A DNA stretch of 63,963 bases, counting the filler, from Reticulomyxa filosa (lineage: Eukaryota > Protista > Foraminifera), in assembly GCA_000512085.1 (NCBI GenBank). It is 14 parts of 14 records of this genome, joined end to end, with 100 filler letters (N's around TTAATTAATTAA, not from the genome) between each part and the next. Parts side by side here need not be neighbours in the genome. Positions count along the whole stretch, not along the records: positions 19,986 to 26,730 come from ASPP01013509.1; 13 more parts are not named here. One strand, given 5' to 3'. Under the pieces are notes generated by a model. That model was not told where the DNA came from. It did no database searches and was given only the letters and a program-made list of their open reading frames with translations. Within the stretch, counting starts at the first letter, position 1, and each line of letters opens with the position of its first letter. Shown in pieces: positions 19,708 through 26,830 of the stretch. The translations under genes and the position numbers were made by a program.

Positions 19708-20011
19708 TGTGTCTATTAATTGCATCGGACAACAATCATCTTTTTGACACTGGCGTGAAAGATAACCATCGTGTTTTTGCTTTCAAAGTCGTTTGATTGC
19801 GAACACAGGGACACTGCAATGGTTGCGAAACTGCGACGGCTGTTGACAGGTTAACCGTATACGTAGTCTGCAATGAGGAGGAGGANNNNNNNNNNNNNNN
19901 NNNNNNNNNNNNNNNNNNNNNNNNNNNNNTTAATTAATTAANNNNNNNNNNNNNNNNNNNNNNNNNNNNNNNNNNNNNNNNNNNNAAAAAAAAAATTATT
20001 ATTCTTTGAAA

Positions 20012-21269
20012 CAGCTCCAAAGCCCAGCAGCTATGGAGGCAGCGAAAGTAATTGACGGGTTACGACGTGACAGTGCAATAACAGCGGAAGTGAGCAAAAA
20101 TATAAAAATATTGTGGAAGGACCCCGGCGTTTTGGCAGCCTTTGAAATGAGGGCCCGCTTTGCAACTCCGGACTCATGCAAACACTTTTTTGACGACATT
20201 GACCGCATTGGTAGAGAAAACTACGATCCCACCATTCAAGTTTTTTTAAAAATGTTTTTGTCAAAAAAAAAAATATATATATATGTATATATTGCTTTGT
20301 TCGTTGCAGTTTTTCTTTTGTTTGTTTTTTTTTTTTTTTAATGTTTTCAATAATGGGGGCTTGTTCATAGGATATATTGCTAGTTCGTAAAAGGACTACT
20401 GGCATCGTCGAAGAGCATTTCACCATCAATCTCACTCATTTTCACATATTCGACGTCGGTGGACAGAGGAACGAACGCAAGAAATGGATCCATTGTTTTG
20501 AAAATGTTTGTGCTTTTGTTGGTTTCATTTTGCTTTGTTTGAAAGATAAATAAATGAAAGGTTAATAATAAAAATAATACATATCAGTATGTTGCAACAT
20601 TTTCCACCCCAAATTATTATATCAGTAATTATGGGTCATTTGTGTATATATGTGTGTGTGTGTGTGTGTTGGTGATTGAGTGCTTGGACGGGGAAACAAA
20701 TATACATAATATAAATAATTATATGTATGCGATTATCATATATGTACATCCAGGTGACTGCTGTAGTGTTTGTGGCTTCTTTGAGCAGTTATGATGAACG
20801 ATTACTCGAGGACGAAAACGTAATAGTTATGCATGAAACGCTTAACTTGTTTGAGGAAATTTGCAACTCGCGATGGTTCACCAAAGCTGCAATGATCTTA
20901 TTTTTAAATAAGAAAGATTTATTTGAAGATAAAATCAAAAATGTGAAACTACAAGTGTGCTGGAAAGAGTACAACGGGAGCAATGACTACCTAGATGCTA
21001 TTGAATTCATTAAATCTGTTTTCAGGGCTAAAAATCATCAAGAAGACAAGCACGTATACATTCACGTATGTAAACTTGCCTCTGCATTATTTTTTTTTGT
21101 TTTGTTTTAATTGTCGGAAGTGAGCGCTCTTTTCTCGAATATTACTTTGCTTATGTCCCCTCCTCTCCAGGTTACAACGGCAACAGATCCTGATAACGTT
21201 AAAAGAGTCTTCAATGATGTACAACATACTGTCATCAATTCTCAACTTAAAACTGGAGGACTTTTATAA
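20012..21269 (+). CDS. Heterotrimeric G protein alpha subunit (5' truncated)
   Basis: Exons ~20012-20239, 20371-20505, 20754-21065 and 21171-21269 give [34 protein letters not shown] and C-terminal GGLL*. Confidence 0.95.
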
Positions 21270-21974
21270 AAAGAGCTGTAAAGTTCTTGCGAAAAATATG
21301 AATGTGTATTTTTTCAGTCAATGTCTTGTATGTTTGAGATTTGCCAGTTGTAGATTGTTGCTTTCCTGTCTTTAATTTTTTTAGACAGAATGAGTTTTCA
21401 TTTTTTCGAGTATAGCACTTTTTTATTGGAGGGTGGGTCAATAGCAACATTTGAGCTCAAAGAATACAACAATTTTGGCTACGGCATTGATTTGAGAAAA
21501 AACACCGTAATCTTCTACGGAAGACTGGAAGTGATATTACATAATTAATTTTAATTACGCTTTTGGTCGATGTGCTTTTTTGAACAAAGCAATTAAGATG
21601 ATATTAGTTACTTTTAACATGTACACCTTTTGGTCTATTTTTAATTTTTCAAAAAATTATTGAATAATAATATGTGAGCCGACTCAAATGGGTTAGTTTT
21701 TCTCTTAATTAAAAACGCTTCACAGTAAAACAACAGCGAAATATTGGTTGTGTAAACAAAAAAAAAGTGAAAATGAGTTTGATGTGGTAATACATACAAA
21801 AGAAAAGCCAACAGAAAGTTGGCATAGCAAATGTACATTGACTGTTGAACTTAAACAACTACATTGAGTGAATAATACCCAAGAGTCCATTTATACCCAA
21901 CAAAACAGTACATTTGCAGTGGCTCTTTTTTCCTCTTCCCTTGGTTTTCTCTCTCTCTCTCCAAAAAAAAAGTT

Positions 21975-23587
21975 TTACAAGGATGTATCATTAATGGCAC
22001 TTGTAAGTTCGTCGATATATTTGTGAACATCAGAGTGTTTGGAGAAGCGTTCTTTTTTGAGATGAATGAGAAGCATGTCGATATCGAACAACCGGAGTGC
22101 TTGAGCAATGCCCTCACTTCGAAAAACAAGTGTACCAGTGGTGACAATAGCTTTAATGGCCACACTTGCATCTTGTTCTTTGTCAAGACAATCAATCAAC
22201 AGATGAGAAACTTTCAAAGAGTCCAAAGATTCTTTTTCATTGGCGACATGCCAATAAAAGGCATAGCACGACAAAATTTGAACAAAAGCACTGCGAGTGT
22301 TCACGGCTTCACTTTTCATGCAAATTTTGGCGAGGGTTTCGACGGAAGGGAAATACGTTTTCATCGCTTGTCTGGTGACTTGTCGAGAGAATAAGTTGAT
22401 GAAAATGCGACACACCAGACATAAAATGGTGTCATTTTTCGAGTATTTCAAAGAGATTTGGACCAATTGGTCGACGTACGCTTTGTTTTTGGCATACGCA
22501 GCGCTGGCATTAGGATGCAGCACCAACACGCGAATCAAATCCAAGAGGACACATAAAGGTTTCTCCGGCCAGTTTTTGGCATAATTTGCAATCAGCTCAA
22601 AGTGTTTTTCACCGAGAGTGGACTGGTGATAGGTTGTCTTATTTTGCAACGTCTGCAAAATCTGGTCAATCAACTGCGCATTATCGGCGTTCTTGTCAAG
22701 TTCTTTATGGAACTCTAGCATTTTTTCCGCATCTTATCAAACGTGCTTTCGCATACACCGGGACGTTGTTGGCATTAATCGGAATGCTCTCAAACGGACT
22801 GGGCTTGTTCTGCTTCGTGTTCGGCTCCGACAGTGTCACATGCTTATCAATCAGCCGTTCCAACTGGCGCACATCCGCACCTGTCATTTCATCCACTTTA
22901 TTGCCACCTTTGAAAAACAGAAATTTCGGCATTGCGTCGATTCCGTACGATCGACTCAGGTTCGGGTTTTTATCCACGTCCACCTTCAAAAAGACGGCTT
23001 TGCTTTTGTGGAACTTGGCCAGTCGTACGTAGTCCCCTTTTATTTGTTCGCACGGGCGACACCACGTAGCGAACCAATCGATCACTATCAACTTGTCCGC
23101 GTTCTCCGATGACGATAGGATTCGCTTCAACTCATTGCTATTGTCACCCACCAATTCTTGGACGTCTCCAGATGAACTGTGGTCTTGATAGTTACTGCCA
23201 CTGCTGCTACTGCTATTCATCATGTTCATCATATTCATCGACCCACCTAAGCCTCCTCCTCCTCCTCCTCCTTGTTGCATTCTTGACATCTCGGTCACAA
23301 ACTCCATTACGTCGGGGTCTCGAGATTGCAACATTGCCATCGGGTTACTCATGTGCTGCTGCAGCTTTTGCATAAATCCTGGCCTCTGCATTAGTGCCAT
23401 CAATCGGGGGTTTGACATCACCATTTGCTGGATACGCGAAACGTCTTCCTTTTTTTTTTTTTTTTTTAAGGGGGGAGGGGAGGGGGGGGTTAAACGTGCT
23501 TTTTTTTTATCCTTCATCTTGTTCATTAAACTAGGTGAAACACATGCACACGAAACAACTTACCGGATTAAAATTCCCAACATTCAT
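21975..23587 (-). CDS. STI1/DP-like + thioredoxin (WCRPC) + PUL-like domain protein; apparent frameshift at ~22720-22740
   Basis: Exon 1 MNVGNFNP (23587-23564), intron 23449-23563. Then MSNPRLMALMQRPGFMQKLQQHMSNPMAM, DWFATWCRPC...FLKVDVD...MPKFLFFKGG, and helical WPEKPLCVLLDLIRVLVLHP...RIFINLF typical of PUL domains. Confidence 0.75.
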
Positions 23588-23985
23588 TTGAGCTAGAGGT
23601 TATTTTAGTAGATTGAAAAAGATATATGAACTAAAAAAATGCAATCAAGGAAAATCACCAGTAGTAAGCTCAAAAGCAAACCAAGTACTAAACATCAACA
23701 CTTTGGATCACCTCAATCTCCAGCAGTGTTTCTAGTCTTATGCTTTTAATTTTTGGAATGGAAAAGAGCACTAAGTAGTTTATATAAACACAGAACTGGC
23801 CTACAAAATTTAGATGGCAGTTTTTTTGCTTTTAAAATTTATTTTATGTTTTTCAACTATTGAACAGTGGACACTGGCATTGAAGTTGGAAAATAATTGA
23901 GAAACCGAAACATATACCCCAGTTTTGGAACATGTAAAAGCTTCTACAAACATTTGCATTTTTTTCATACAACTTGTTTTTTTAT

Positions 23986-24647
23986 TTAATAGTCCAAATA
24001 TTTTAAAGAATAACGCAAAGTGGCTCGTCGTTTGGTTTGACGAAAATATTTATGTGCAAATAAAGGAACAGGTTTCCAGTGAACAAAACTACAATAACCA
24101 CCTCTATTGCATGTGTACTCATCAAATTGACGACAGCTCACGTCTTCAAAGTTTGTCACGGGAGAGTATTCTGCTTTGACAATTTGTCCTGCATAGTAAC
24201 GTCCATGCAGATTGAATAATGCTTTTTCAGCTTGTCTCTCGGTTGCAAATTTTACAAATACATTTCCAAACTTTTTCAGAAAAAACAAGCAAATAGGGGA
24301 TGGGCAGTGAAAATACACACCTTCTGATTTTTTTGTTTTGTTGAATACATTACCATATGAAATGCTGCATTGTCACATACAACAAATTTTTCCACCTCTC
24401 CAAATTTACTCAGTTCATTTAAAACATCTTCATAAAAATGTTCATAGTGTTCGGAAGCATCTGATGCTTCTCCCCCACAGGGTGGCACATAGAAATGACG
24501 GAGCAGTAAGGTCTTGCTTATTTCTGGTTTTAGGTGCAGACGTCTACAATTGTTTCCATTACGACAAACCCCAACTTTCAGATAAAAAGTACAAGTAATC
24601 TTTTCGTTTTCAGTGCAACTTTTTGTTGCAGAAACAGTAAGGAACAT
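23986..24647 (-). CDS. U2AF1: U2AF small subunit (U2AF35)-like: CCCH-UHM-CCCH, no RS tail
   Basis: CTFYLKVGVCRNGNNCRRLH; FYEDVLNELSKFGEVE..VCDN; intron 24271-24353; GNVFVKF...GRYYAG...EYSPVTNF; CRQFDEYTCNRGGYCSFVH. Confidence 0.9.
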
Positions 24648-26830
24648 TTATGTGAATTATTAACAACAAACAATAAAACATTATGTTTGGTTCAAGTGAT
24701 GGAAAAAAAAAAAAAGAAATCATCAACTTGACATTGTACATTATGTTTGATGATTAAGGATACTATGATTAAAATAGCTTAAAGCCAGAACTGAACGTCA
24801 CAAGTATAAAAAAGGAATATTGAAATTACACAGTGAACCTTCAGTAATAATCGGAGAAATCGTTTAATATTTTTTCATGTAATTTTCGACGTTCTCAAAA
24901 CTACATTTTGTTCTCATTTTATTTAAAAAAATGTTGAACTTTATATAAGGAAAAGAAGAGCTGTACTTAATATTTTTTTGCAATCTTAAGAAAAAGATTC
25001 AAACCAATCAGTTTCGAATGAAGTTACTATTTCGGTAAAACAGATAGAATGAAAAAAATAATCTACCCTTTTCACAGTAAAAGAATATGTCTGTTTCGTT
25101 CTTGTATGAAAAATACATATTTTGAAGTCCGCTAAGAGATATGACGCATCGCTATCATTTTTGCAAAGTCGTCCATACGTAGAATCAACTTTTACTCGAT
25201 ACAGTTGAGATTTCAAAAGATAAACTAAAAACACACTTTTGTAGAACTAGGAAAGCTAAAAAAAAGCAAAGGAAAAGCAAAAGAAAAGGTAAAATTTGGG
25301 GCGACTGAGGCGCAGCCTTATTTTACTTTTTTTTTTCGCTTTTTCATTTATTTGCTTTTTTTTTAATGCGTTGTTAAATCATGTAAATTTTACTTTTATT
25401 TAGTTTTTTGTTTAATTTGAATCTTATTTAAAGGTTTGCTTATTTAATAAAATTATGTTATTTTTTTAATCATTTCATTTTTTTTCTTTGTAAATTATCA
25501 GCACATTGTTTCCGGAGTTCTTTTTTTGATCCGAATGGTCCATTTGTGAATACTTTCGTTTTCACTATCCACCACAGATTTTCTATTTGGTTCAGGTCTG
25601 GAGAATTTGTAGTGAAATTCAATACTTTGATAGCATTTGTTCAAACTATTTTTTGCTGTAATTTCTGTGTGGCTGGTGGCATTACCTTGCTGAAATATAC
25701 AATTTTCATTATCTTATAAGCCCAAATTAATGCTTTTTGAGCATTTCATCACATAAAATTTCTTTGTAAATATATGCATTTACACATCAATTAATGTTAC
25801 ATGCATAAACAGGTCCTAATACTACAAAGCAAGACCACCGATTATGCATCCACTACCAATTTGATATTTTTATAATGAACGTCAGCTTCAGTTTACGCAC
25901 ACATTTATGACTTACACAAAACTGTTTTGAAACTTTGCGCAAACTCCAGCACTGACGCAACAGGTCAACAGCATGTCTTTTGTCAAAATTCTCAATCATT
26001 TAGTAATTTTCAAAAAAATAATTAAAAAACTCAAATATTGAACTACATTGAGCTAAAAAAAAAAAAGAAAATAAAGGATAAAATATTGAAATAATTAGAA
26101 AAGATGTAATAAAAAAACTAAATTCAAAATGATATTTAAAAAATACACGATTTGTAGATTTTTTTTTTTAAAAATTAGGTCTAGATGTTGTTTTTTCATG
26201 GGAAAATCAATAATCTATATAAAGTGACGTTTTAGGTGTCAACTTTACTTTGCATTCTACTGTGTATATGGACATGAAGATTAGTTGGAATGATGCGTAA
26301 TGTAAGTTGAAGGCTCCAAAATGAGCTTTAAATTGAGTACAAACAGTGCATTGCGTGCGAAATAATGTGATAATGAAAATTTCGTTTAAGTTGTTTTTTT
26401 ATGTTTTCTTCTTGTTGTTTTTCTCATTTTACTTTATGATTAAAACAGTCAAAAGAAGAAGAGATCCAAATCATTAATCATCATTGGATTCGAACATTAA
26501 ACATTAAACTAGGATGGATCGAAGATTTCGACAAATTTGATGTCAATTATGTTAGTCCATTTGTTCTTTCTTTTTTTAAATACTAATCGGTAACACATTT
26601 CTCTCAAAAAAAAAAAAAAATTTATTACTATCATTGCAATCATTGGCTCCAAATAAAATGAGCATTATGACCAACCACTAAAATTAAAATCCAAAAATAA
26701 CGAACAAATAAAAGAAAAAAAAAAAAGTTANNNNNNNNNNNNNNNNNNNNNNNNNNNNNNNNNNNNNNNNNNNNTTAATTAATTAANNNNNNNNNNNNNN
26801 NNNNNNNNNNNNNNNNNNNNNNNNNNNNNN

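Follow-up and report, generated by a model that had tools for sequence, protein, structure and literature searches.

A U2AF small-subunit orthologue with three altered RNA-contact residues in the foraminifer Reticulomyxa filosa

The window analysed here is a stretch of 63,963 nucleotides of DNA from the naked foraminifer Reticulomyxa filosa (assembly GCA_000512085.1). Positions 19986-26730 of the window are the contig ASPP01013509.1 (6745 bases), and the minus strand of this piece carries a gene for the small subunit of U2AF (U2AF35/U2AF23), which extends from an ATG at 24647 to the stop codon TAA at 23988-23986 (gene 23986..24647). The U2AF small subunit, the partner of U2AF65, recognises the AG that terminates introns on their 3' side. 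Translation, tblastn and database matches divide the gene into two exons. Exon 1 (24354..24647) encodes a divergent N-terminal segment, the first zinc finger and the first half of the UHM, and exon 2 (23986..24270) encodes the second half of the UHM, the second zinc finger, a short basic tail and the stop codon. The intron between them (24271..24353, 83 nt) starts with GTAATG, contains a T-rich tract and ends in GAAAAAG, which gives it an AAG acceptor. The reading frame is open over ~192 codons in a piece with a G+C content of about 24-48%, and the splice signals are intact. A protein from this locus is present in the databases (P0001) under the name 'U2 snrnp auxiliary factor, small subunit [Reticulomyxa filosa]'. 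In the PDB, both exon 1 (E 1e-21) and exon 2 (3e-16) match S. pombe U2AF23 (4yh8/7c06), and the UHM portions of the exons also align to 1jmt. The AlphaFold2 model of P0001 has a pLDDT of 80.5 and a pTM of 0.78, and compares with the U2AF23 crystal structures 7c06/7c07/4yh8 at TM 0.72-0.84. Whole-protein searches and the AlphaFold2 model used the public P0001 sequence; the gene model preferred here on homology was searched exon by exon.

The public gene model and ours share the AAG acceptor and differ in the donor. The annotation behind P0001 uses GTGTGT at 24320, later than GTAATG at 24353, and thereby adds 11 residues to the UHM (24321-24353, minus strand). These residues are present in no homologue in our alignment (A1) and have a pLDDT <50 in the AlphaFold2 model. 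Across the junction 24354|24270, the alignment with homologues from foraminifera and elsewhere shows neither gap nor insert, and a tblastn search with residues 10-100 of P0002 stops exactly at 24354, so that the adjacent query residues 100|101 fall at 24354|24270. Because of the gapless alignment, the tblastn break and the lack of any homologous counterpart for the 11 extra residues, the intron 24353-24271 with the donor GTAATG appears to be the better gene model. The first-pass annotation had placed the intron at the same positions, ending in GAAAAAG, and the homologues bear it out. Its suggestion that the region upstream of the finger might be intronic did not hold: the ATG at 24647 yields an N-terminus of 18 residues up to the first Cys, compared with 17 in human, which aligns to homologues. 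An upstream exon, suggested by ...CAACAAAAAG before the finger, is ruled out by this alignable N-terminus of normal length, and the gene thus has two exons; the A-rich stretch ahead of finger 1 is coding, not an acceptor.

Zinc finger 1 (24534..24593, minus strand; Pfam zf-CCCH, E 1.8e-5) has the spacing C-x8-C-x5-C-x3-H with four of four ligands. Zinc finger 2 (24079..24135, minus strand) follows directly after the UHM with the spacing C-x7-C-x5-C-x3-H, and neither the UHM core nor any of the eight zinc ligands has been lost. Aligning the protein with S. pombe U2AF23 (4yh8/7c06) places Asn (AAT, 24558..24560) at the position of human His29 and Arg (AGA, 24543..24545) at the position of human Ser34, and translation of finger 2 gives Ser (AGT, 24088..24090) at S. 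pombe Asn164, which is human Asn170. The first-pass annotation had reported Arg34, Asn29, a second finger that retains the equivalents of human R156/Q157 while reading C-S-F-V-H, and the absence of an RS tail; all of these were confirmed, with the stop codon closing the frame after the short basic tail. Three RNA contacts are therefore altered in R. filosa rather than one (His29 to Asn, Ser34 to Arg and Asn164 to Ser in S. pombe numbering), and each of the three codons is one base away from a canonical codon. Other contacts persist: finger 1 keeps Phe20, Cys27, Arg28 and Arg35, and six of the seven residues that read -2A and -1G (Phe20, Cys27, Arg28, Arg159, Cys163, Asn164 and Phe165) are unchanged, the exception being Asn164.

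Crystal structures of U2AF23 with RNA show what these positions do (PMC7505975). His29 stacks on the U at -3, Ser34 forms hydrogen bonds to the same base with its hydroxyl and amide, and Asn164 reads O6 of -1G and packs on -2A. In vitro, the H29A mutant has reduced affinity for RNA; in S34Y and S34F the large ring stacks on the -3 base, and U, A and C are bound about equally. The use of AAG sites in human cells is raised by S34F/Y (PMC7505975). An engineered human S34R protein rescues a U2AF35-dependent event in the same manner as other large-residue mutants, whereas small residues and Thr fail (PMC4702124). Both of the residues that form the -3 pocket, His29 and Ser34, are thus replaced in R. 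filosa, by Asn and Arg.

From its sequence, we identify this as an intact two-exon gene for the U2AF small subunit of R. filosa, an orthologue that has both CCCH fingers and a UHM fold. Like S. pombe U2AF23 and human U2AF35 (U2AF1; 4YH8, 7C06, 7C07, 1JMT), the protein is built as finger 1-UHM-finger 2 with all zinc ligands, and shares with them Phe20, Arg28, Arg35, the Arg-Gln pair of human 156/157, Arg159 and Phe165. It resembles S. pombe U2AF23 in having no RS domain. It departs from both in Asn29, Arg34 and the Ser at Asn164 (human Asn170), and in the diverged N-terminal motif before finger 1. The Arg-X-aromatic motif of its UHM is Arg-Tyr-Tyr, as in the other Rhizaria of alignment A1, compared with Arg-Trp-Phe in human. 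A ZRSR2 or U2AF35-related protein, which would belong to the minor spliceosome, was considered and ruled out: ZRSR2-type proteins have Phe at position 29 where R. filosa has Asn, and the long N-terminal extension is missing. The ZRSR2-like protein P0132 is distant from the R. filosa protein in the tree, and no minor-spliceosome snRNAs have been reported in Rhizaria (PMC11347168).

When P0001 was used in a word search, closer relatives came up at 54-58% identity; by cluster look-up they are the rotaliid foraminifera Nonionella stella (P0157), Bolivina argentea (P0165), Globobulimina turgida (P0164) and Elphidium margaritaceum (P0160). Over the core, the R. filosa protein is 58-63% identical to the rotaliid copies, and it joins the four genera in the tree with weak support (87/53). 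Rotaliid copies resemble it in the motifs around the UHM and after finger 2, but those with an N-terminus have the canonical His29 and Ser34, and the finger 2 Asn is also canonical. The R. filosa gene stands out in its rate of change. Its terminal branch is 1.11, compared with 0.01-0.08 in rotaliids, and its identity to every outgroup is ~15 points below that of Nonionella, for instance 43% against 59% to a metazoan-like U2AF1, and 38% against 51% to the cercozoan protein. Because rotaliids keep His29, Ser34 and Asn, the three contact changes are specific to the R. filosa lineage, in which the gene has evolved fast. They may be part of a general drift, since ~40% of all residues differ between R. 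filosa and the rotaliid copies.

The C-terminus is also reduced. A long tail rich in Lys, Glu and Arg, with conserved motifs, is found in rotaliids, in Cercozoa sp. M6MM and in marine relatives, and is missing in R. filosa; a downstream exon for such a tail was sought by tblastn and not found elsewhere in the piece 19986-26730. Rhizarian U2AF35 proteins (P0157-P0161, P0002, P0032, P0025) have no RS domain (A1, columns about 300-433). Their tail carries the motif F-P-x-R-G-T-S-x-E-R-R...W-N, and foraminiferal copies have a conserved C-terminal end as well; the R. filosa protein has neither. The sister group of foraminiferal U2AF35, which comprises proteins from marine metatranscriptomes (P0002, that is L002, with P0032, P0071 and P0127), has Pro34, and one member has Tyr29.

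To place the three residues in a broader context, we counted them among natural relatives of the protein. A HMMER scan of 1.84 billion cluster representatives returned 1902 relatives, and positions were counted in the best 150 of these, finger 1 being recognisable in 127. Of these 127, 85 have Ser at position 34, 16 have Thr, 7 Asn, 4 Pro, 3 Ala, 2 Arg and 10 another residue. A residue other than Ser is thus common in protists (42 of 127 representatives), and Arg34, to judge by these counts, is rare at a position that is not invariant in nature. Position 29 is more uniform, with His in 111 and Asn in 7 of the 127 representatives. At the finger 2 contact, 96 of 104 representatives have Asn, and R. 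filosa is the only one with Ser. None of the seven Asn29 proteins has Ser34, which is present in 85 of the remaining 120; the partners of Asn29 are Asn, Arg or Gly. Entamoeba U2AF35 has Asn34, while the Entamoeba splice consensus is strongly UAG (PMC3561952), and therefore a residue other than Ser34 does not by itself predict the -3 base.

One further protein, P0112 from a marine metatranscriptome, combines Asn29 with Arg34, and has Gly at the finger 2 contact. It thus resembles the R. filosa protein in all three respects, the finger 2 contact being other than Asn in both, but its tail is long (622 residues), and the tree puts it in a different clade that is well supported. All Asn29 proteins besides R. 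filosa fall into one clade of the tree, which adjoins two Amoebophrya proteins and is distant from R. filosa. Given this separation, the Asn29/Arg34 pair had at least two independent origins, too few for secure statistics on a coupling of positions 29 and 34. The clade consists of marine U2AF35 proteins (P0035, P0063, P0068, P0100, P0111, P0112, also designated L001, and P0074), which have Asn29 or, in one case, Ala. In its Asn29 members, position 34 is Asn, Arg or Gly, and the member with Ala29 has Ser34; a residue other than Asn is often found at the finger 2 contact. The proteins possibly come from dinoflagellates.

Three other features share the contig with the U2AF gene. A gene for a G-alpha protein, truncated by the edge of the contig, lies at 20006-21269 on the plus strand. 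The annotation splits it into genes of 157 and 122 residues, which run on through intron sequence; homology to P0188 points to a single gene whose introns lie at 20240-20370, 20506-20753 and 21066-21170. On the minus strand, 21975-23517 encodes a protein of 500 residues that combines an STI1/HOP DP-like segment with a thioredoxin and a PUL domain. The gene has two long ORFs in different frames, which overlap at 22705-22721 next to an A-run. In the annotation they are joined by a 40-nt intron that could equally well lie in any of three places, and the overlap may be a homopolymer frameshift in the assembly. At 25470-25999 (minus strand), between the U2AF gene and the end of the contig, short broken ORFs resemble the terminal part of a Tc1/mariner-like transposase (DDE_3, E 9e-6), and a weak HTH match lies upstream of them; these are probably the remains of a decayed transposon.

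The first-pass annotation had described AAG acceptors as seen across the window. We examined this with introns located through homology, or through database proteins that map exactly, on two R. filosa contigs: the present piece and ASPP01003634.1 (L003), which was reached through the relatives of the G-alpha protein (three other NCBI matches belong to other assemblies). The three G-alpha introns in the piece, all on the plus strand, end in TAG (20240-20370), CAG (20506-20753) and CAG (21066-21170), and the U2AF intron on the minus strand (24353-24271) ends in AAG. L003 carries a paralogous G-alpha gene, 78% identical, in which the intron 519-628, mapped exactly with P0188, has a T-rich tract followed by eleven A and a G. 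It occupies the same position as the third G-alpha intron of the window (21066-21170), which ends in CAG. Four further annotated introns of L003, rebuilt from gene ranges and product lengths, all end in TAG. Left out of the count were the L003 gene 1988-3162 and one intron of the L003 gene 3576-4735, where TAG and AAG are both possible. The former is annotated on the minus strand as a WD40 gene of 359 residues, and one or two GT/GC-AG introns within its range do not reproduce that product; either its annotation or its intron type is odd.

The nine introns on the two contigs have five TAG, two CAG and two AAG acceptors, a sample too small to give the frequency of the -3 base. Poly(A)-AG acceptors are real, but a minority among these nine. 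In both AAG cases a T-rich tract is followed by an A-run, and the AG used is the first one after the tract. The claim of AAG acceptors across the window is therefore not upheld, as the homology-placed G-alpha introns show, and to the extent of this small sample the genome is not one of AAG acceptors. The accompanying proposal of a naturally rewired 3' splice-site system stands in part. The protein is a U2AF35 orthologue with both -3 residues replaced, its own intron has an AAG acceptor and one intron on L003 ends in eleven A and a G. Set against these are the predominance of TAG and CAG among the acceptors, the frequency of residues other than Ser34 in nature and the UAG consensus of Entamoeba with its Asn34. 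Since the other foraminifera keep His29 and Ser34, any such system is not a foraminiferal one.

Several explanations can be considered for the altered pocket. Arg34 and Asn29 could form a pocket adapted to prefer A at -3, having co-evolved with poly(A)-AG acceptors throughout the genome. The change of both pocket residues, the A-runs before the final G in the gene's own intron and in L003 519-628, and the raised use of AAG by S34F/Y in human cells (PMC7505975) would be in line with this. Seven of the nine acceptors, however, are TAG or CAG, three of them in the neighbouring G-alpha gene, and the paralogous G-alpha introns end in CAG here and in AAG on L003, showing that either is used at one position. 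With canonical residues in rotaliids and Asn34 alongside a UAG consensus in Entamoeba (PMC3561952), we regard a preference for A as quite unlikely, and rewiring towards AAG is unproven. At the opposite extreme, the substitutions could be neutral drift that has no effect on splice-site choice, if short introns with strong T-tracts use the first downstream AG and depend little on the -3 base. Position 34 varies widely in nature, and both AAG acceptors follow a T-rich tract and an A-run without an earlier AG. But few positions of the protein are as conserved as His29 and the finger 2 Asn (111/127 and 96/104), and H29A lowers RNA affinity in vitro (PMC7505975), which makes a change of no consequence improbable.

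The protein could also be a fast-evolving and partly degenerate extra copy, with a canonical U2AF35 encoded in the unassembled part of the genome doing the work. Its very long branch, the divergence of an otherwise conserved N-terminal motif, the loss of the Rhizaria-type C-terminal tail and the changes at three near-invariant contact residues would all fit such a copy, and the assembly is made of short contigs. The open frame of ~192 codons, the eight zinc ligands and UHM core together with the pTM of the AlphaFold2 model, and the intact splice signals argue for a working gene instead. In two word searches, which cover proteins between 112 and 355 residues long with words in common with the query, this protein was the single R. 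filosa match; the assembly is fragmentary, and a canonical second copy, or one annotated as shorter than 112 residues, would escape them. We consider an extra copy unlikely. A sequencing or assembly error in a Ser codon is scarcely credible: while a single base separates AGA from AGC or AGT, 4 of the 11 surrounding residues are not those of the rotaliid finger, and divergence over the whole protein is ~40%, so that an isolated error in this one codon is not to be expected.

The R. filosa protein, then, keeps its fold, its zinc ligands and most of its AG contacts, loses both side chains that favour U at -3 and has one contact to -1G altered. It is most likely a working orthologue with a rebuilt -3 pocket, and this pocket is probably less specific for U. 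We lean, at slightly better than even, towards a pocket that tolerates U, C and A rather than one that prefers A. Loss of the stacking platform of His29 and of the hydroxyl of Ser34 would remove the contacts that favour U, and the long planar side chain of Arg34 could cover the -3 base as Tyr34 and Phe34 do in the disease mutants, replacing the role of His29. With those contacts lost and the base covered, the pocket would have little base preference and would not be tuned to A. A tolerant pocket agrees with the acceptor sample, which is mostly TAG and CAG with a minority of A-runs followed by AG. The large side chain at position 34 is shared with human U2AF1 S34F/Y and the engineered S34R; the human mutants differ in keeping His29, so that their pocket and that of R. 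filosa are not alike. A bolder proposal, which we hold to be rather doubtful, is that the stacking platform has moved from position 29 to Arg34 while finger 2 changed to match, letting the pocket accept purines and making acceptors of an A-run plus G usable. Were this true, the pocket would be a natural counterpart of the S34F/Y disease mutants, and the same Asn29/Arg34 pair would have arisen independently in an alveolate-like lineage.

Ser34 of U2AF1 reads the base before the AG, and in myelodysplasia and lung cancer few splicing-factor residues are mutated more often. The occurrence of Ser34 in only about two thirds of the sequence clusters tempers claims that a residue other than Ser34 alone signals rewired splicing. 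The R. filosa U2AF35 is, as far as these comparisons indicate, a lineage-specific variant of a known factor, and the initial observation at position 34 extends to three contacts, an accelerated branch and a lost tail. A natural and apparently working Arg34 protein that lacks His29 and has a changed finger 2 contact would provide a ready-made test of how important the -3 contact is, and of which residue pairs can replace it.
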